Virus record (IMG/VR): IMGVR_UViG_3300029911_000001
Span: 1-64,000 of that record
Strand: one strand, 5' to 3'
DNA: 64,000 nucleotides
Within the stretch, counting starts at the first letter, position 1. Each line of letters opens with the position of its first letter. This document shows, one piece after another, positions 19,316 through 63,348 of this stretch. The notes beneath the pieces were generated by a model that worked only from the letters and a program-made list of their open reading frames with translations, was not told where the DNA came from and did not search any database. The translations under genes and the position numbers were made by a program.

Positions 19316-20749
19316 CTAATTAATATTCAGTGAGAAGCGTTTCTTCCCGCTATCCCAAATACGATACCATCCCTTGGCTTCCGCTTCGGATTTCTCATCC
19401 ATGCCTGCCTTGACCCTTAGAGCGTACTTGCTTTTACGAACTGAACCGTTGGTGTACGAGTAATCCGGCTTTAACTCCTCTTCGAATGTGAACCCCAGCT
19501 TTCCATAGAGCCCACCCGTGTGAAACCGATTATCACTAAAGGTGACCATTCGCTTGAATCCCATAGAGCGTAGCTCAGGAAGAGCTAGATGAAGAGCCTT
19601 TTCATGAGGATTCCATGCTTTATATTCATGATTCCAACTAGCCCGATGCCACAGGATGACACCCTCTTCACGTTTCATAAAAACCCATACACCCACAAGT
19701 TGGGTACCATGGTGGGCAGTCACCGTCAGGCCACCGGATGCGGCTCCGAGGTAATGGTACGCATCTAGAAAGGTTCGAGCTTCAAATGGAGTTTCATGAT
19801 GGATAGCAAAAACCGGCTTGATGCGCTTCCCACTCCGGGGTTGAATCATCGAACGTACGAGTGCCTTAACTACATCAGGTTTCTCATTCCACTCATCCTG
19901 ATAAATCTGGAGAAGGCGGGTTGCGCCCTGTTGTAACCACTGAAACTTATCGGCGTCTTTAGACCCTTGAAGGTATCTCTCCGAGTGCCATATCAGTCCA
20001 TGGTACTCAATAGCTAACGAGGCCGAAGGAACGTAGATATCCACTGTATGTCGTCTGGAAAACTGGGGAACCAAAGAGGACAAAGGGACTTCCATCTCTA
20101 CCGGAACGTGGTATTCGTTACGAATGAAATCGGCAATATGGGTGGCTGGAGAGTTCGCCATCATACCCATTCGGTGACATCCACAGGACTTAATCAGTCC
20201 TTGTACGAGGGAGTCGCCGTAAACCACTGACGTGTTCCCGCAATCACAAGTCACATTCCACTGGTACTTCCCCCCCTGACCCACTCCATGTACAGTCGTT
20301 GTCGTAAGAGCGCCGAACCGCTGCCCTTCTATGTCCTTGAAGTTAGCGAGTGTGGCTTGTTCTCTCATGTAACAACCACATGAAGACGTGTGTCCACTAT
20401 TCAAGTGAGCAGTGGATACCAGTGCCATGCCCCCACATTCACAAGAGCACTGCCAGAATGACTGACCGTTATACGACCCCTCGTTACGTTGGTGGTCTAA
20501 TGTTATAACTAGAAGCCGTCCGAATTTCCTGCCCACCATACTGGGGATACGATTCTGGCGACTCTCTTTTACCAGACAACCACATGACTTGGATAACCCT
20601 CGCAGCACAGAAGCCCACGATATTTCTTTTGTTCCACCGCAGGAGCACACGAACCGATACTTCGTATGAGACACCCTAAGATTAAGAGGTAGGTTCTCCT
20701 GCTGAGGGTCAAGACGAAGTCGGTTCCACTGCATACCCAGCATATCCAT
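19316..20749 (-). CDS. putative homing endonuclease (Zn-ribbon repeats, PD-(D/E)XK-like nuclease, GNAT-like C-terminus)
   Basis: Three G.RFG.L.V/CxCG/SCGC repeats; VDIYVP..LAIEYHGLIWH; C-terminal FLDAYHYLG...TFSDNRF..G.LY..LGF. Confidence 0.75.
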   Translation of the reverse strand: MDMLGMQWNRLRLDPQQENLPLNLRVSHTKYRFVCSCGGTKEISWASVLRGLSKSCGCLVKESRQNRIPSMVGRKFGRLLVITLDHQRNEGSYNGQSFWQCSCECGGMALVSTAHLNSGHTSSCGCYMREQATLANFKDIEGQRFGALTTTTVHGVGQGGKYQWNVTCDCGNTSVVYGDSLVQGLIKSCGCHRMGMMANSPATHIADFIRNEYHVPVEMEVPLSSLVPQFSRRHTVDIYVPSASLAIEYHGLIWHSERYLQGSKDADKFQWLQQGATRLLQIYQDEWNEKPDVVKALVRSMIQPRSGKRIKPVFAIHHETPFEARTFLDAYHYLGAASGGLTVTAHHGTQLVGVWVFMKREEGVILWHRASWNHEYKAWNPHEKALHLALPELRSMGFKRMVTFSDNRFHTGGLYGKLGFTFEEELKPDYSYTNGSVRKSKYALRVKAGMDEKSEAEAKGWYRIWDSGKKRFSLNIN

Positions 20750-20759
20750 ACTAATACCC

Positions 20760-20795
20760 AAAAAGCGAAGGGACTGAGATTTCTCTCAGTCCCTT
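20760..20795 (-). terminator. intrinsic terminator after the major capsid gene
   Basis: 12-bp stem aagggactgaga/tctcagtccctt followed by a T-run on the minus strand. Confidence 0.75.
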
Positions 20796-20817: not shown

Positions 20818-21774
20818 TTAGTTCTCGCCTACGTTCGGGGAAGCGAAGCGACCACTTACAGTCAGACGCTGTACGCCGGACGGGTTGAAGACCAAGAAGC
20901 CGAGGTTCTCGAAGATGGAGAAACCAATCTGGCGGAGGTCAGGACGGTCTGCACTCATGACGGTTAGCGGGATACGCTCTGGGATGACACCGAGGAACTC
21001 AGCGTCGGCCAGAATGTACACGCAGCCATAACCAACCTTACGGGACTGGAGCAGAGTTGCGCCCCACAGGTAACCCATAACACCGGTCTTCAAGAGCTTG
21101 CGCTGTGTCTCACGGTCGATGTTCTGCTGTGTCCACTTGAGCAAGTCAGTGTAGTCGCGGGGGTTGAAGAAGCAGAAAGCCACCGAGAGGTCGTGACGCT
21201 GAACCTGACCGAAACCATCAGCCATGCTGTTGATGTCGATAGGAGCCGAAATCGCGATGTCCACGTTGTACACGGGGTCGGTCTGCGCCTTGCCTGCTGC
21301 GGCAGTTGCAACCGCGTCAAACAGGGTGAAAACGTAGCCGTCTTCTGCTGCACCGACTTCAGCCTTCGCCAAGTTAAGCGAATGGGCCACGAGGTCGAAG
21401 CGGCGTTCCTTAATCTGGGTGATAGGAATCATCGGGTTGGATACGATTTCGAACGTCGGAACCGTAACACGCTTCGGCTTTGTCACGCGAACGATGTCAC
21501 CACCTTCTTCACCGACGACGAAGGCTTCCACGAAGCTACCACCGGGGGCCGAGCCCACAGTCATAGCAGCAGTGTCAAATTCCTTATCGTAGATGGGCAG
21601 AGCACCATCGGGCAAAGTCTCAACCATCAGCGCCTTACGGGCGATGGACATATAGTCACGACGACGACGAAGTGACGGGCCAAGCGAGGCAGCAAGCTTC
21701 TGACGACCACCGGCAGTCTTAAGCAACTGTCCGAGCATCGCGGTCTGCTGCTGTGTGCGAGAAAGATTAGCCAT
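20818..21774 (-). CDS. major capsid protein (HK97 fold)
   Basis: 318 aa; RKALMVETLPDGALPIYDK and IGFSIFENLGFLVFNP; order protease-scaffold-decoration-MCP; strong codon bias; followed by a terminator. Confidence 0.85.
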   Translation of the reverse strand: MANLSRTQQQTAMLGQLLKTAGGRQKLAASLGPSLRRRRDYMSIARKALMVETLPDGALPIYDKEFDTAAMTVGSAPGGSFVEAFVVGEEGGDIVRVTKPKRVTVPTFEIVSNPMIPITQIKERRFDLVAHSLNLAKAEVGAAEDGYVFTLFDAVATAAAGKAQTDPVYNVDIAISAPIDINSMADGFGQVQRHDLSVAFCFFNPRDYTDLLKWTQQNIDRETQRKLLKTGVMGYLWGATLLQSRKVGYGCVYILADAEFLGVIPERIPLTVMSADRPDLRQIGFSIFENLGFLVFNPSGVQRLTVSGRFASPNVGEN

Positions 21775-59954: not shown

Positions 59955-59985
59955 ATAATACGACAGAAATGGAAAAATGTGTGAA
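59955..59985 (-). promoter_or_regulatory. putative promoter for the RNA-TerD unit
   Basis: GTATTAT (-10-like) 6 nt before the first base of R3; weak -35; same GTATTA motif at ~19270, ~56455 and ~63907. Confidence 0.5.
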
Positions 59986-59992
59986 GTATTTT

Positions 59993-60220
59993 TCAGCACA
60001 TATCCCATGCACGGATTTCGGAGTGTTCGAAGTCTACATCGGCGAGGTTCTCTTCGCCTACCATCTCAGCCGCGAACGCACGGTAAGTCTCTTCCGTGGA
60101 GTCGGAGGGGTGGTGGAACTCGAACTGGAACTTACGAGGGTCTCCGTCTTCGGTCTCGACACGATGGCCGCAGCAACCGGAGTCGCAACCGTAGTAGCTA
60201 TGTAGGATTAGAAGTTTCAT
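59993..60220 (-). CDS. small hypothetical protein
   Basis: GAGG RBS; YGCDSGCCGH motif. Confidence 0.6.
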   Translation of the reverse strand: MKLLILHSYYGCDSGCCGHRVETEDGDPRKFQFEFHHPSDSTEETYRAFAAEMVGEENLADVDFEHSEIRAWDMC

Positions 60221-60515
60221 TCTGTAACCTCACTAATTCTGCGTACCCCGCAGGGTTCCACTCTTTATACACCCGAGGGTTGACGAACATGAACGTAGGT
60301 GCAAGGTCATACCGTTGGACTTCTGCGAAGGCGTCAGCCATACCCTCAAGGGTAATTGCACCCGGAGTGGGCTGGGGGGTTGGTACGTTCCACAAATACC
60401 CCATCACGCCACGCTGCTTCAGCAACTCAAGGTCAACAGGAACAGGTGCTGGCGTCGGGAGTACCGCCGCGACCGCTACTGCAACCATGGTGCCTAAAAA
60501 GTTTCTACGGTTCAA
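60198..60515 (-). CDS. Tat-signal protein with permuted major-capsid-like segments
   Basis: MNRRNFLG plus hydrophobic core; GVMGYLW and MADAFAEVQRYDL..F.NPR.Y match this phage's MCP. Confidence 0.75.
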   Translation of the reverse strand: MNRRNFLGTMVAVAVAAVLPTPAPVPVDLELLKQRGVMGYLWNVPTPQPTPGAITLEGMADAFAEVQRYDLAPTFMFVNPRVYKEWNPAGYAELVRLQNETSNPT

Positions 60516-60750
60516 TCTCCTGCCTCCATGAAGTGCGTGATGGGACCATACTTCGGCTGGGCTGCAATCTTCCAGCAGTTTATGATTCGGAATGCTCGAC
60601 CTGTGCCGGTGAGAATACGACCAGTCTGAGTCTTCACTGCGAAGAAGCGTTCCTTCGATTCATCGGTGGGGGCTCCGGGAGTCCATGCCTCTGGAGGCAG
60701 GGTACCGGCCCAGTCACCAATCGCTTGCAGATGTTTTTCTTTTTCTCTCA
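60512..60750 (-). CDS. hypothetical protein
   Basis: Overlaps both neighbours; start uncertain. Confidence 0.5.
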
Positions 60751-61359
60751 TGCGAAGAACTGCTCCCCAACTTTCTCGTTCACGAACAGCACGACGTTCC
60801 AATCAGTGGGCTTGCGAGTATAGGTCGCAGTGTGATGGAAGAACCCCTTAGTAGAAAGCTCAACCCAGTCCACAGGTGCGGACGCCCTGTAACTCTTCGG
60901 CCTGTCTCCGACGTACCGGCGTTCGGTACGAACACGAATCTCATCCATGGGGAGGTCGAGGTCACCCACCACGATGGCTCCCCACATGTACCCCATGACC
61001 GGGCGACCCTCGGTGTAGTGATAACTCGCACAGACCATATCGCCGGGACTACCGTTGAAGTGACGACCCTTACTCCATGACTTCTTAGCCCCTCTGCTGT
61101 ATCGAGACTCCCCCATAAAATCCTCCCAACCAATGGTGTCTTCAAGCCAGAGAAGATTGTCGGGGTTGATGTAAAGAACCTCCGCCCGATCCCCATGAGC
61201 TTCCATCTTGTCGAAGGCGTCCTTGATACTTTCAGGAGATAGCCCCGGCGTCAGCTTGATAGGCTGGGGTGTGGGAACGTACTTCGCCAACGCTGTGAGC
61301 GGAGAGACGAGGGCGAGAGCCACCGATGTTTGGAGAAAATTTCGACGCGATACTAACAT
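60748..61359 (-). CDS. Tat-signal protein with a major-capsid-like domain
   Basis: SRRNFLQ...ALA-K signal; SIKDAFDKMEAH...YINP and VMGYMWGA match the MCP. Confidence 0.75.
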   Translation of the reverse strand: MLVSRRNFLQTSVALALVSPLTALAKYVPTPQPIKLTPGLSPESIKDAFDKMEAHGDRAEVLYINPDNLLWLEDTIGWEDFMGESRYSRGAKKSWSKGRHFNGSPGDMVCASYHYTEGRPVMGYMWGAIVVGDLDLPMDEIRVRTERRYVGDRPKSYRASAPVDWVELSTKGFFHHTATYTRKPTDWNVVLFVNEKVGEQFFA

Positions 61360-61512: not shown

Positions 61513-61577
61513 GAACCTATCAACCTCTCAGATGCTGAGGAGCTAACCTCTACTAAAGAGGTTGATAGTCACGAAAG

Positions 61578-61658
61578 AGCTACGAGAGGGATTCGAACCC
61601 CCGGTGTTTGTATGCCGCATTACAAGTGCGGTGCATTCGACCACTCAGCCATCGTAGC
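61578..61658 (-). tRNA. tRNA-Thr(UGU) with a 12-nt variable region
   Basis: GCTACGA/TCGTAGC acceptor; CCGCA-CTTGTAA-TGCGG; GGGGG-TTCGAAT-CCCTC; no encoded CCA. Confidence 0.85.
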
Positions 61659-61942: not shown

Positions 61943-62251
61943 TTACTTATACTTCGGGAAGAATCCAAAGTTCTTGGGGTACTCTTCTCTCGGTATGAAA
62001 ACGATTGCAACTTCTTGTCCGTTCAACGTGGACTCGGTGATGACTTGATGCTTCGGCACTTCCTTCGCCTTCTCGAACTCCTCGTCGGTTACCTTGCACA
62101 CAACCTTGGCGAAGGACGTTTGCAGCCACTTGACCATATCCGGGTCGGTGGGGAAGTTCAGGTAGAGCGACAGAGGCCCGTGTGCTGCGGCCACGATGGC
62201 GTTACCTACCGGGATGGAGCCCTTCACCAAAACGTACATCTTCAATTTCAT
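61943..62251 (-). CDS. peptidyl-tRNA hydrolase, PTH2-like
   Basis: KMYVLV...G....AAH....W.....KVVCKV; true start at 62251 (the longer ORF overlaps tRNAs). Confidence 0.7.
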   Translation of the reverse strand: MKLKMYVLVKGSIPVGNAIVAAAHGPLSLYLNFPTDPDMVKWLQTSFAKVVCKVTDEEFEKAKEVPKHQVITESTLNGQEVAIVFIPREEYPKNFGFFPKYK

Positions 62252-62340
62252 GCTGGCCTCGTGTATGAGTCCGATAGGGCTCATTGGACTCATATATGAA
62301 GCACTAAAGCCGTTAGTGCTCCATATATGGGACTTTATCT

Positions 62341-62413
62341 TGGTGGGCACTTCGGGAGTTGAACCCGAATCACCGTTTCCCTTGGCAGGGTGCCACGGTG
62401 AACCAATGTGCCC
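62341..62413 (-). ncRNA. tRNA-like RNA without a D arm
   Basis: GGGCAC/GTGCCC-ACCA end; TTCGGG-TTCAACT-CCCGAA T arm; single long arm TCACCGT/ACGGTGA. Confidence 0.65.
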
Positions 62414-62419
62414 GAATCT

Positions 62420-62506
62420 TGGTTGGGGAGGCAGGATTCGAACCTGCAATGAGCTTACGCTCGGGGGCTTCAAAGGCCCTTGACCTACCATTGGTACGAC
62501 TCCCCA
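62420..62506 (-). tRNA. tRNA-Gln(UUG) with a long variable arm
   Basis: TGGGGAG/CTCCCCA-ACCA; GGGC-CTTTGAA-GCCC; variable hairpin GAGC-GTAA-GCTC. Confidence 0.8.
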
Positions 62507-62511
62507 ATAAC

Positions 62512-62745
62512 TTATGCTGTGACCAAATCCTTCGGAGGCCACTCAAACTTCCAGTTGCTCCGCTCACGAATCTTGTTATCGCGAATGTTGTAGAACCCGG
62601 CGTACGCTGCACACGTGATAGAGCAGAACACAGGATGACTCAGGTCGTCCGGCATCTCAACCATCTGAGGCCCACGTGGGGTGTCAGGGTCTTCGTGATG
62701 ACGCCGATAATCTGCACAACCGGGTGCTGGACACGCAATCAACAT
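62512..62745 (-). CDS. small Cys-rich protein
   Basis: CP..GC and FCSITC motifs. Confidence 0.55.
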   Translation of the reverse strand: MLIACPAPGCADYRRHHEDPDTPRGPQMVEMPDDLSHPVFCSITCAAYAGFYNIRDNKIRERSNWKFEWPPKDLVTA

Positions 62746-62748
62746 AGC

Positions 62749-63348
62749 TCACTCCCAGTACAGCCTATAGTTCGTTCCGTATACTTCGTTCAACTTCTTG
62801 AAGAAGGCATCGGTCTTTATCTTGACCATGAAATCGTCACCCTTGGCGACGACGCCTTCCCACACTGGATACTTTCCGCTGCGGACATCATCAACGAACT
62901 GCTTGTTGAGGTTGCCCTCGTAAACCACTTCAGCCGCGTATGGCAGGTCTCCGTACTGCTTGAGAAACTGCCGGGGCGACATCATCCCCTTCTTGAACAG
63001 GTACACATCGAACAAGCGAAGCTGCTTAGGCTCCCCCGGCGTATGCACACCCGCGAAACTTGAGTCCCCGAAGAACTCTGTGAAGACCGTGGTCCTCTGG
63101 CAGTTCCGGTCGTAGTCCTTCACCCGGCGAGTCAACTCATCTGCCATGGTATCCATGAAGACCGGAATCGCTTCACCGAAGACCGGGTTGCTCTTGTCGA
63201 ACAACTCATGTCGGGTACCAAACTTGAACCAACCCTTCTTGGGGTTCCACTCCCAACGAAGGTTCGAGCCATCGTACTTGTAGAAAGCGATGCACTGCTT
63301 ACCTAGAGGGGCTTTGGAACTTCCTTCGATACTTGGGTACTGCTCCAT
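62749..63348 (-). CDS. ATP-dependent RNA ligase family protein
   Basis: Nucleotidyltransferase motifs KYDGSN, EFFG, LFDV, EGVVAK and KIK. Confidence 0.8.
   Translation of the reverse strand: MEQYPSIEGSSKAPLGKQCIAFYKYDGSNLRWEWNPKKGWFKFGTRHELFDKSNPVFGEAIPVFMDTMADELTRRVKDYDRNCQRTTVFTEFFGDSSFAGVHTPGEPKQLRLFDVYLFKKGMMSPRQFLKQYGDLPYAAEVVYEGNLNKQFVDDVRSGKYPVWEGVVAKGDDFMVKIKTDAFFKKLNEVYGTNYRLYWE

Follow-up and report, generated by a model that had tools for sequence, protein, structure and literature searches.

Small genes in a giant soil phage that join a predicted twin-arginine export signal to rearranged pieces of the phage's own capsid protein

Can a phage build predicted exported proteins from pieces of its own capsid protein? 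This question is raised by two small open reading frames in the DNA analysed here, which is 64,000 nucleotides long (positions 1 to 64,000 of IMGVR_UViG_3300029911_000001) and is referred to as the window. A preliminary description made from the sequence alone proposed that both ORFs begin with Tat-type signals, share a VPTPQP linker, and are built from pieces of the major capsid protein (MCP), with one of them permuted. It inferred that the copied segment is probably the HK97 A-domain and that the products may be exported or membrane-tethered capsid mimics that serve as immune decoys, in superinfection exclusion, or as anchors for procapsid assembly. The findings in this work confirm the observation. 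The interpretation is only partly supported, and the number of such genes had been under-counted.

Both ORFs exist at the stated coordinates on the minus strand within one translationally coupled operon, and all motifs quoted in the preliminary description are present. ORF2 (60748-61359, minus, 203 aa) starts with an ATG that is preceded by an AGGA Shine-Dalgarno sequence. ORF1 (60198-60515, minus, 105 aa) starts with a TTG that is preceded by GGAGG. The middle ORF (60512-60751, minus, 79 aa) lies between them, where its ATG overlaps the ORF2 stop (ATGA) and its stop overlaps the ORF1 start (TTGA). A Cys-rich ORF of 75 aa (59993-60220, minus) overlaps the end of ORF1 by 23 nt and belongs to the same operon. 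The middle ORF and the Cys-rich ORF have no known family. A tRNA-Thr(UGU) gene (61577-61658, minus; identified with ARAGORN, Rfam tRNA 54 bits) is located immediately upstream of the operon, and the cassette sits inside the tRNA and accessory region of the phage. A promoter and terminator scan of the operon found nothing. The GC and GC3 of the genes resemble those of other genes of the phage, so a foreign origin is rejected.

The MCP (20818-21774, minus, 318 aa) was identified by its matches to the major head protein family phrog_2522 (E 3.4e-42) and to phage G gp27 (PDB 6WKK, E 6e-52), and it is 72% identical to gp334 of the cultured relative Tunturi_5. A lack of significant alignment to the MCP had been named in advance as grounds for rejecting the observation, and both ORFs were found to align significantly. 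The BLASTP alignment of ORF1 to the MCP has E 4e-10 (19/45 identical, MCP 168-210), and a second, out-of-order HSP, ELLKQRGVMGYLW against MCP 226-238, has E 0.002. The match of ORF1 to the MCP still has E 8.6e-8 against all 799 six-frame ORF segments of the window. An HMM of the MCP family finds only ORF1 (E 9e-8) and ORF2 (E 0.007) besides the MCP itself among these segments, where the next hit has E 0.4. The hhalign comparison of the ORF1 family with the MCP family gave Prob 96% and E 3e-9 to 1e-8, and that of the ORF2 family with the MCP family gave Prob 89-92% and E 5e-7 to 2e-6 (ORF2 34-155 against MCP 173-267). The real scores are 51.3 and 60.4, whereas 100 column shuffles gave maximum scores of 20.7 and 23.3. 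The similarity of ORF2 to the MCP is visible only with profiles, since BLASTP gave a single short HSP with E 0.006. The pieces are closest to MCPs of the phage's own clade, the Tunturi clade (16/34 identical), and far from phage G (9/34). No DNA-level similarity was found between ORF1 or ORF2 and the MCP gene, so recent gene conversion is rejected.

The region represented in these proteins is MCP 173-267 (20974-21258, minus). ORF2 is colinear with this region. ORF2 aa 34-68 (61156-61260) match MCP 173-207 (hhalign; hmmsearch domain HMM 173-207), and ORF2 aa 116-155 (60895-61014), which carry the VMGYMWGA strand and the following strands, match MCP 227-267 (hhalign; hmmsearch domain HMM 232-266; BLASTP). 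Between them, ORF2 aa 89-115 (61015-61095) form a 27-aa insert that is absent from the MCP and is seen as a gap in the hhalign alignment, and much of it is invariant in a three-sequence alignment (KKSWSKGR..NGSPGDMVCA). ORF1 is permuted. ORF1 aa 30-42 (60390-60428; ELLKQRGVMGYLW) match MCP 226-238 (hmmsearch domain HMM 227-238) but are placed before ORF1 aa 50-85 (60261-60368), which match MCP 175-210 (hhalign; hmmsearch domain HMM 174-210, E 1e-6). ORF1, ORF2, and the third paralogue described below align only to MCP 173-267, with no match to MCP 1-170, and ORF1 and ORF2 have no PHROG major-head hit. They do not represent the full-length HK97 fold with N-arm, E-loop, spine helix, P-domain, and A-domain. 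Superposition of predicted structures on the A-domain had also been proposed as a test of the permutation. The AlphaFold2 model of ORF2, built from its three-sequence alignment, had pLDDT 31 and that of the MCP, built from 17 sequences, had pLDDT 37, so that no fold search was run and the presence of an A-domain fold (two helices around a four-stranded sheet) is left undecided. The A-domain assignment rests on the position after the spine helix, using general HK97 topology, and the fold, this assignment, and the structural meaning of the permutation are untested.

Both proteins have Tat-type N-termini followed by a Pro-rich linker. The signal peptide of ORF2 (aa 1-25; 61285-61359) consists of SRRNFLQ, an uncharged h-region, and ALA before K26. 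The N-terminus of ORF1 (aa 1-19; 60459-60515) consists of NRRNFLG and a hydrophobic stretch without a clear AxA cleavage site, so it is possibly a signal anchor. The motif is followed by 19 uncharged residues in ORF2 and by 23 in ORF1, which fits the pattern of an (S/T)-R-R-x-F-L-K-like motif and an uncharged hydrophobic stretch. Among all possible starts in six frames of the window, only these two ORFs and one evidently spurious ORF have an RR motif followed by a hydrophobic stretch. The curated Tat HMMs gave divided scores that leave the assignment undecided, where ORF1 passes TIGR01409 (17.3 against a cut-off of 16.7 bits) and fails Pfam TAT_signal PF10518 (19.9 against 22.7), and ORF2 is below both cut-offs (12.7 bits for TIGR01409 and 15.8 bits for PF10518). 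The motifs were read from the sequence without TatFind or SignalP, and Tat-dependent translocation was not assayed. There is no Cys near the signal end in ORF1 or ORF2 and no lysis genes are in the neighbourhood. A spanin or lipoprotein reading is rejected, because there is no lipobox.

Homologues of the genes were identified in four other contigs. Loci are denoted by L and homologous proteins by P, each followed by a number. Homologues of ORF2 with 84% and 63% identity keep the full N-terminus, and the RR, F, h-region, and ALAK are invariant in three homologues. Homologues of ORF1 have 67% (P0130, L014) and 40% (L001) identity, and the RR.F.G motif is conserved in L001 and L014. Non-conservation of the signal peptides in homologues had been listed as a ground for refutation, but the RRxF(L/F) motif plus hydrophobic N-terminus is conserved in every homologue, including P0002, P0003, and the L001 orthologue, although P0130 has a Glu inside its hydrophobic region after 11 residues. 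The permuted order of ORF1 is kept in the 67% homologue (P0130, L014), but the permuted strand is lost in the L001 orthologue. The shared VPTPQP linker is conserved in ORF2 homologues (PTPKP) but not in ORF1 homologues. ORF2 is under purifying selection (dN/dS 0.10-0.16). The middle ORF is conserved in L014 but replaced by an unrelated 62-aa gene in L001, the Cys-rich ORF is conserved next to the ORF1 homologue in L014, and the gene order is rearranged among relatives.

A search for further fusions of this kind, which had been suggested as a check, identified two more genes. A third paralogue (ORF3) sits 1.7 kb beyond the window. It carries a Tat-type signal and is colinear with the same MCP region (hhalign against the MCP family, Prob 87%, E 3.7e-6), although its C-terminal third looks degenerate. 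Tat-type signals in this phage occur only on the MCP-like ORFs, which holds for 3 of 3 in the 12.6-kb locus L135 and for the only two credible ones in the window. Tunturi_5 encodes gp172 (PP885688.1 122430-122723, 97 aa, annotated as a hypothetical protein), in which a Tat-like signal (TRRQFF) and a Pro-rich linker are followed by pieces of that phage's own MCP in permuted order (MCP HMM E 2.4e-13; BLASTP E 1e-12 and 2e-7 to MCP 92-120 and 267-295). This is therefore a recurring design in this phage lineage. However, an MCP piece also occurs in a small ORF without a Tat signal, which may not be a real gene (L144), so the signal is not obligatory. A whole-genome scan of the more distant LR745208 (485 kb, MCP 49% identical) with the MCP HMM found no MCP-fragment ORFs.

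The genes are rare and variable. They are absent from 33 related loci, from 185,579 GTDB species genomes, and from the rest of IMG/VR, which returned only the same phage. A metagenome scan found only the same phage and L014. The blastn and tblastn searches of the locus against 50,697 phage records found no homologues beyond MCP hits, and for the ORF1 piece that matches MCP 175-210 a tblastn search of 2.3 Gb of phage records hits only the Tunturi_5 MCP. A HMMER search of 1.84 billion representatives with the ORF2 profile recovered as genuine hits only the protein itself and one 46-aa fragment (P0124), whereas three other hits (P0125-P0127) are repetitive proteins and spurious, and MCPs were not recovered. 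The Pfam (E up to 0.1 for ORF1 and ORF2), PHROGs, NCBIfam, and PADLOC searches gave no functional hit other than the Tat signal, with no PADLOC hit for seven proteins of the cassette and its neighbours at E up to 0.01.

We consider that ORF1, ORF2, and ORF3 form a lineage-specific accessory gene family under selection in an acidobacterial-type jumbo phage, where each protein joins a Tat-type N-terminal signal and a proline-rich linker to a small domain copied from the phage's own HK97-fold MCP. This explanation as a whole is about as likely as not. The analysis itself demonstrates that the copied region is MCP 173-267, that it is colinear in ORF2 and ORF3 and rearranged in ORF1, and that the family arose by duplication of capsid-gene segments within this phage clade. 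It is by inference that the region is placed in the A-domain half of the MCP, that the proteins fold in the cytoplasm and are targeted by the host Tat pathway to the inner membrane or periplasm, and that ORF2 is probably cleaved after ALA while ORF1 is possibly left as an N-terminal anchor. Since gp172 attaches a similar signal to different capsid pieces, being a compact piece of the capsid protein seems to be the selected property, rather than one particular fold. No result bears directly on function, and the functional ideas were not examined. Our best guess, which is tentative at most, is a conflict role at the cell envelope, such as superinfection exclusion or interference with other phages or host envelope factors that recognise capsid surfaces.

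Other explanations were also considered. The proteins may be capsid-interface mimics that act on the cytoplasmic side, where the fragment binds a partner of the capsid protein (unassembled own or rival MCP, a decoration or scaffold protein, or a host capsid-sensing defence protein) while the Tat-type peptide tethers the complex to TatBC or the membrane, or disposes of it by export. This view covers the decoy and membrane-anchor ideas of the preliminary description. Two different MCP substructures were recruited to the same kind of signal (A-domain pieces here and P-domain pieces in gp172), and the fragments keep the most conserved MCP motifs at 42-55% identity. The A-domain helices form the inter-subunit contacts of HK97-fold capsomers (PMC8346489). 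Tat can carry bound partners, and T4 proheads assemble on the membrane. However, an essential assembly factor should be conserved across the clade, so an essential procapsid anchor is unlikely for genes this rare and variable. A decoy for cytoplasmic sensors gains nothing obvious from an export signal, no PADLOC or other defence-related hit lies nearby, and no interaction data exist. We consider this explanation unlikely.

It is equally unlikely, in our view, that the N-termini are ordinary Sec signals or single-pass membrane anchors that happen to contain RR, in small membrane proteins whose capsid ancestry is irrelevant to targeting. The Tat HMM scores, the short signals (about 19-25 aa), the missing AxA site of ORF1, and the charged residue in P0130 favour this reading. 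However, (S/T/N)RRxF(L/F/I) is kept in all eight family members examined, even at 40% overall identity, it matches the canonical S/T-R-R-x-F-L-K consensus closely, and ORF1 passes TIGR01409. It is very unlikely that the genes are non-functional debris of illegitimate recombination involving the capsid gene, with a similarity and signal-like N-termini of no biological consequence. Jumbo phage genomes are rich in small orphan ORFs, the ORF3 C-terminus looks degenerate, the L144 ORF may not be a real gene, and the family is tiny. Against this reading, ORF2 is under purifying selection, and the intact reading frames, coupled starts, and conserved N-termini persist across relatives diverged to a saturated dS. 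The copies share no DNA-level identity with the MCP gene, so they are old and have been maintained.

Capsid proteins are usually seen only as virion building blocks or as triggers of bacterial immunity. Here, a phage lineage has repeatedly cut compact pieces out of its own capsid gene, rearranged them, attached export signals, and kept them under selection. If they are exported, this is a new route by which structural genes seed accessory functions and a new kind of envelope-acting phage protein. It is possible, although doubtful, that a clade of acidobacterial jumbo phages repeatedly fuses pieces of its own capsid protein that are compact and, by inference, contiguous in three dimensions to Tat export signals to give exported or membrane-displayed capsid-surface mimics. 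These would be a previously undescribed class of phage accessory protein, used for example to exclude or misdirect superinfecting relatives or to titrate factors that bind capsids. The question is open to experiment, because Tunturi_5 and its host Tunturiibacter psychrotolerans are in culture and gp172 is small. The minimal permuted modules (about 60-80 aa) could also show which HK97 substructures fold on their own.

We found no described protein of this kind, but several known systems share part of the design. Small, accessory, variable, and envelope-targeted phage proteins with signal peptides include the superinfection-exclusion and envelope proteins T4 Imm/Sp, T5 Llp, and Cor, although none of these is known to derive from a capsid protein, they have no sequence relationship to the proteins described here, and such a function is not shown for the latter. 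Duplication of capsid genes is represented by T4 gp24 and gp23, and activity of a short capsid segment in phage-host conflict by the Gol peptide of T4 gp23, which triggers the Lit protease. However, gp24 is a full-length virion protein, Gol is part of the MCP itself and not a separate gene, and neither carries an export signal. The same architecture is found in gp172 of the Tunturiibacter phage Tunturi_5, the nearest cultured relative, which is not mentioned in the paper on that phage. It uses MCP 267-295 followed by 92-120, which we infer to be the P-domain sheet and the start of the spine helix, instead of the 173-267 region, and it is not a sequence homologue of ORF1 or ORF2 outside the signal.

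The family 4 A-domain encapsulins (PF08967/DUF1884; PDB 2PK8; Andreas & Giessen, 2021, PMC8346489) are stand-alone proteins of about 100 aa that consist only of a piece of the HK97 fold (two helices and a small sheet), and they show that this substructure can exist without the rest of the capsid protein. Those proteins are cytoplasmic, lack a signal peptide, sit in two-gene operons with enzymes in hyperthermophilic archaea, and have very low sequence similarity to capsids. Here, the proteins are phage-encoded, recently derived from the phage's own MCP (42% identity), and carry Tat-type signals, with no PF08967 match and with small orphan ORFs and tRNA genes as neighbours in place of an enzyme partner. 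The non-circularly permuted HK97 fold of the Bordetella phage BPP-1 capsid protein (PMC3863775) is a precedent that the order of HK97-fold elements along the chain can be rearranged in nature. That protein is a full-length, functional capsid protein, whereas here only a fragment is rearranged, in an accessory protein with a predicted export signal.

The 231-kb IMG/VR contig IMGVR_UViG_3300029911_000001, the first 64 kb of which form the window, belongs to a jumbo phage. The major capsid protein (MCP) of this phage (20818-21774, minus strand, 318 aa) is 72% identical to gp334 of Tunturiibacter phage Tunturi_5, a 309-kb myovirus of Arctic-soil Acidobacteriota (PMC11924767). The MCP is also 49% identical to the MCP of uncultured phage LR745208 and 35% identical to Bacillus phage G gp27. 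The MCP matches phrog_2522 'major head protein' (E 3.4e-42) and the solved phage G capsid protein 6WKK (E 6e-52). Directly downstream of the MCP gene is a 481-aa ORF (19316-20761, minus strand) with several repeated Cys-rich (CxCG) units that could be a mobile endonuclease-type gene; this ORF was not examined. 

The two ORFs under study are located on the minus strand just downstream of tRNA-Thr(UGU) and are part of a four-gene operon. ORF2 (60748-61359, 203 aa) starts with an ATG that is preceded by AGGA. It is followed by a 79-aa ORF (60512-60751) whose ATG overlaps the ORF2 stop (ATGA). ORF1 (60198-60515, 105 aa) has a TTG start that overlaps the stop of the 79-aa ORF (TTGA), with GGAGG 7 nt upstream. 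The last gene is a Cys-rich 75-aa ORF (59993-60220) that overlaps the end of ORF1. One gene caller started ORF2 twelve codons later (protein record P0001). However, residues 1-12 are conserved in both homologues and only the upstream ATG has a ribosome-binding site. The surrounding region holds four tRNA genes and an RNA-ligase-like ORF with a KYDGSN motif (62749-63348). A 199-aa ORF (61943-62542, minus strand) with a weak PTH2 peptidyl-tRNA hydrolase match (aa 100-157) overlaps tRNA-Gln (62420-62506, minus strand) if it is read from its first GTG, so its true start is probably further downstream. A ThrRS-like gene is located next to the cassette in L001, a contig of a relative that encodes an ORF1 orthologue.

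The resemblance of both ORFs to the MCP is real. A lack of significant alignment to the MCP had been named beforehand as grounds for rejecting the observation, and the alignments that were obtained are significant. The BLASTP search of ORF1 against the MCP gave E 4e-10 (19/45 identical, MCP 168-210) and a second HSP, ELLKQRGVMGYLW against MCP 226-238, with E 0.002. When every six-frame ORF segment of the window (799 segments) was searched, ORF1 still found the MCP at E 8.6e-8 and ORF2 found it at E 4e-5. The HMM that was built from 11 MCPs returned only the MCP, ORF1 (E 9e-8), and ORF2 (E 0.007) from the same 799 segments, where the next hit has E 0.4. Profile-profile comparison gave Prob 89-92% for the ORF2 family (ORF2 34-155 against MCP 173-267) and 96% for the ORF1 family (ORF1 50-85 against MCP 175-210). 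The real scores are 51.3 and 60.4, while 100 column-shuffled MCP alignments scored at most 20.7 and 23.3 and the reversed alignment scored 12.7 and 16.7. The tblastn search of ORF1 against 2.3 Gb of phage genomes has only one hit, which is the Tunturi_5 MCP.

The pieces are closest to MCPs of this phage's own clade, where 14-16 of 34 residues are identical and the LLK.GVMGYLW motif is exact only there. The pieces are far from LR745208 (11/34) and phage G (9/34). The similarity of ORF2 is the weaker of the two. Plain BLASTP detects only the VMGYMWGA strand of ORF2 (E 0.006), and a HMMER search of 1.84 billion representatives with the ORF2 profile did not recover MCPs. There is no DNA-level identity to the MCP gene and the base composition resembles the rest of the phage. 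The copies are therefore old duplications made within this lineage.

ORF2 consists of a signal (aa 1-25: SRRNFLQ, an uncharged stretch, then ALA before K), a PTPQP linker, a piece matching MCP 173-207, about 20 residues that align weakly, a 27-aa insert (aa 89-115) of which much is invariant among homologues, and a piece matching MCP 227-267 that possibly continues to the C-terminus at low confidence. ORF1 consists of NRRNFLG and a 12-residue hydrophobic stretch with no clear AxA site, a PTPAPVPV linker, a piece matching MCP 226-238, a second PTPQPTPG linker, a piece matching MCP 175-210, and a C-terminal helix-like tail. The strand that follows the helix-strand-helix unit in the MCP precedes that unit in ORF1. 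HMMER reported both domains in this swapped order in the window and in the 67%-identical homologue in L014 (VFSW01530932.1). The 40%-identical orthologue in L001 has lost the recognisable strand motif. It is inferred that a tandem duplication of the segment followed by trimming at both ends would produce this order. The 604-bp contig L015 (ENA ERZ27249796 k141_1449116), which was compared with window 59980-60640, is 100% identical to the window from the codons for ELLKQRG of ORF1 onward. Its upstream part is unrelated and encodes an N-terminus weakly like acidobacterial 'permease prefix domain 1' (E 0.017). This contig is either an assembly chimera or a natural recombinant that replaces the Tat signal, and the junction falls exactly at the start of the permuted piece.

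MCP 173-267 is located after the predicted spine helix (about 119-140). This position corresponds in the HK97 topology to the A-domain followed by the first C-terminal P-domain strands. The preliminary description had proposed the A-domain and named structure models as the test for it, but the AlphaFold2 models have only pLDDT 31 for ORF2 (three sequences) and pLDDT 37 for the MCP (17 sequences of at least 79% identity), and no fold searches were therefore run. The assignment rests on general knowledge of the fold and was not tested. 

The HMM support for the Tat-type signals is borderline. ORF1 scored 17.3 bits against a TIGR01409 cut-off of 16.7 and 19.9 bits against a Pfam PF10518 cut-off of 22.7, while ORF2 scored 12.7 and 15.8 bits on the same two models. 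The comparative evidence, which concerns the conservation of the signals that had been set out in advance as a test, is stronger. The (S/T/N)RRxF(L/F/I) motif followed by an uncharged stretch is kept in all ORF2 homologues (84% and 63% identical). It is also kept in both ORF1 homologues, including the one that is only 40% identical overall. One homologue (P0130) has a Glu inside the hydrophobic stretch. Among all possible start codons in six frames of the window, only ORF1, ORF2, and one evidently spurious ORF have such an N-terminus.

ORF2 is under purifying selection (dN/dS 0.10-0.16 in three comparisons). ORF1 has diverged much faster between the same two genomes (40% vs 84% identity; dS saturated). 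The family is very small. ORF2 has three relatives among 5.8 billion clustered proteins and one further fragment among 1.84 billion representatives. ORF1 has two relatives in the protein search (P0129 and P0130) and the L001 orthologue that was found from the contig. Only the same phage was found in IMG/VR and nothing was found in 185,579 species-representative genomes, whereas more than 1,400 MCP homologues were found. The cassette is also fluid. The middle gene is replaced by an unrelated gene in L001. An ORF2-like gene (L014:704-1054, plus strand; MVSRRGFIQ...) is located downstream of the ORF1 homologue and the Cys-rich gene in L014. The gene order there differs from the window, so the cassette is rearranged or has an extra copy in that relative. 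The ORF2 homologue in contig L002 stands without an ORF1. Thirty-three loci from other phages that were anchored on the neighbouring 729-aa gene lack the cassette.

The architecture is not limited to these two ORFs. The scan of the DNA just beyond the window with the MCP HMM identified a third paralogue, ORF3 (202 aa), at contig 65742-66347, minus strand (plus-strand 6001-6606 of L135, a 12.6-kb stretch that extends past the window), 1.7 kb beyond the window end. ORF3 begins with MNRRKFLL, has a hydrophobic stretch ending with APKLLA, and aligns colinearly with MCP 176-259 without the insert (Prob 87%, E 3.7e-6). Its last 70 or so residues are R/S/P-rich and look degenerate, so it may be decaying. 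The three Tat-like N-termini and the three MCP-HMM hits in L135 are the same three ORFs.

A search of related jumbo phages for such fusions had been suggested as a check, and the whole Tunturi_5 genome (4,335 ORF segments) yielded one. Besides the MCP, the HMM found only gp172 (PP885688.1 122430-122723, minus strand; L139:24430-24723 in the extracted stretch; 97 aa, 'hypothetical protein') at E 2.4e-13. It consists of an N-terminus beginning with MQTMTRRQFF and a hydrophobic stretch, a PAPAPKP linker, a piece matching MCP 267-295 (E 2e-7), and a piece matching MCP 92-120 (E 1e-12, 55% identical). These are again two segments in swapped order but from a different part of the capsid protein, which is inferred from HK97 topology to be the P-domain strands and the start of the spine helix. 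The Tunturi paper does not mention gp172. Only three annotated Tunturi_5 genes (gp19, gp162, and gp172) have Tat-like N-termini by the filter used here. The signal of gp162 (117114-117689, minus strand; L139:19114-19689; 191 aa) resembles that of ORF3 (MNRRK..., ...PKLL) but its passenger domain has no MCP similarity, so the signal module may be shuffled between passenger domains. Tunturi_5 gp90 (68759-69988, minus strand) is also annotated as 'major head protein' but is not matched by the MCP-family HMM (E > 1), so it is either a different capsid-like fold or an annotation artefact. The more distant LR745208 (485 kb) has no MCP-fragment ORF. A 106-aa ORF in another IMG/VR contig (L144:2791-3111, plus strand; IMGVR_UViG_3300041809_002179) carries the MCP 102-127 motif (MCP HMM E 3e-5) behind a CxxC zinc-ribbon-like N-terminus without a signal peptide, and it may or may not be a real gene.

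The observation made in the preliminary description, that two proteins with Tat-type signals are built from pieces of the phage's own MCP and that one of them is permuted, is confirmed and extended by this work. Its interpretation is supported only in part, where ancestry, permutation, and signal type hold while fold, export, and function were not put to the test. The architecture, ancestry, selection, and recurrence are demonstrated by the analysis. It is inferred that the proteins fold in the cytoplasm and are taken by the host Tat pathway to the inner membrane or periplasm, where ORF2 is probably released by cleavage after ALA and ORF1 may stay anchored. Two different capsid substructures have been attached to the same kind of signal, and the joined pieces in both permuted cases are likely neighbours in space by fold topology. 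We therefore think that the selected property is being a compact piece of capsid protein delivered to the envelope.

The genes are rare, fast-evolving (ORF1), rearranged among relatives, and located in the tRNA and accessory region, which fits conflict genes better than core assembly factors. Superinfection exclusion or another envelope-level interference is our best guess, and it is a tentative one at most. Action on the cytoplasmic side as interface mimics that are tethered or disposed of through Tat is considered unlikely, and so, to about the same degree, is the reading of the N-termini as ordinary Sec signals or membrane anchors. The reading of the ORFs as debris is considered very unlikely. 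The preliminary description had also suggested immune decoys and membrane anchors for procapsid assembly. However, a decoy for cytoplasmic capsid sensors does not explain the export signal, and an essential procapsid anchor does not fit the patchy distribution.

Exapted HK97 sub-domains are already known, and the finding would carry more weight if export and capsid mimicry are confirmed. Full-text searches for capsid proteins with twin-arginine signals and for capsid-fragment decoys returned nothing relevant. Permutation of the HK97 fold has a precedent in the BPP-1 capsid protein (PMC3863775), but that protein is a full-length capsid protein. The nearest described proteins are the Family 4 'A-domain' encapsulins, which are stand-alone HK97 A-domains of about 100 aa (PMC8346489). 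The proteins in this work differ from that family in that they have no PF08967 match, are not in an operon with an enzyme, and carry a signal peptide.
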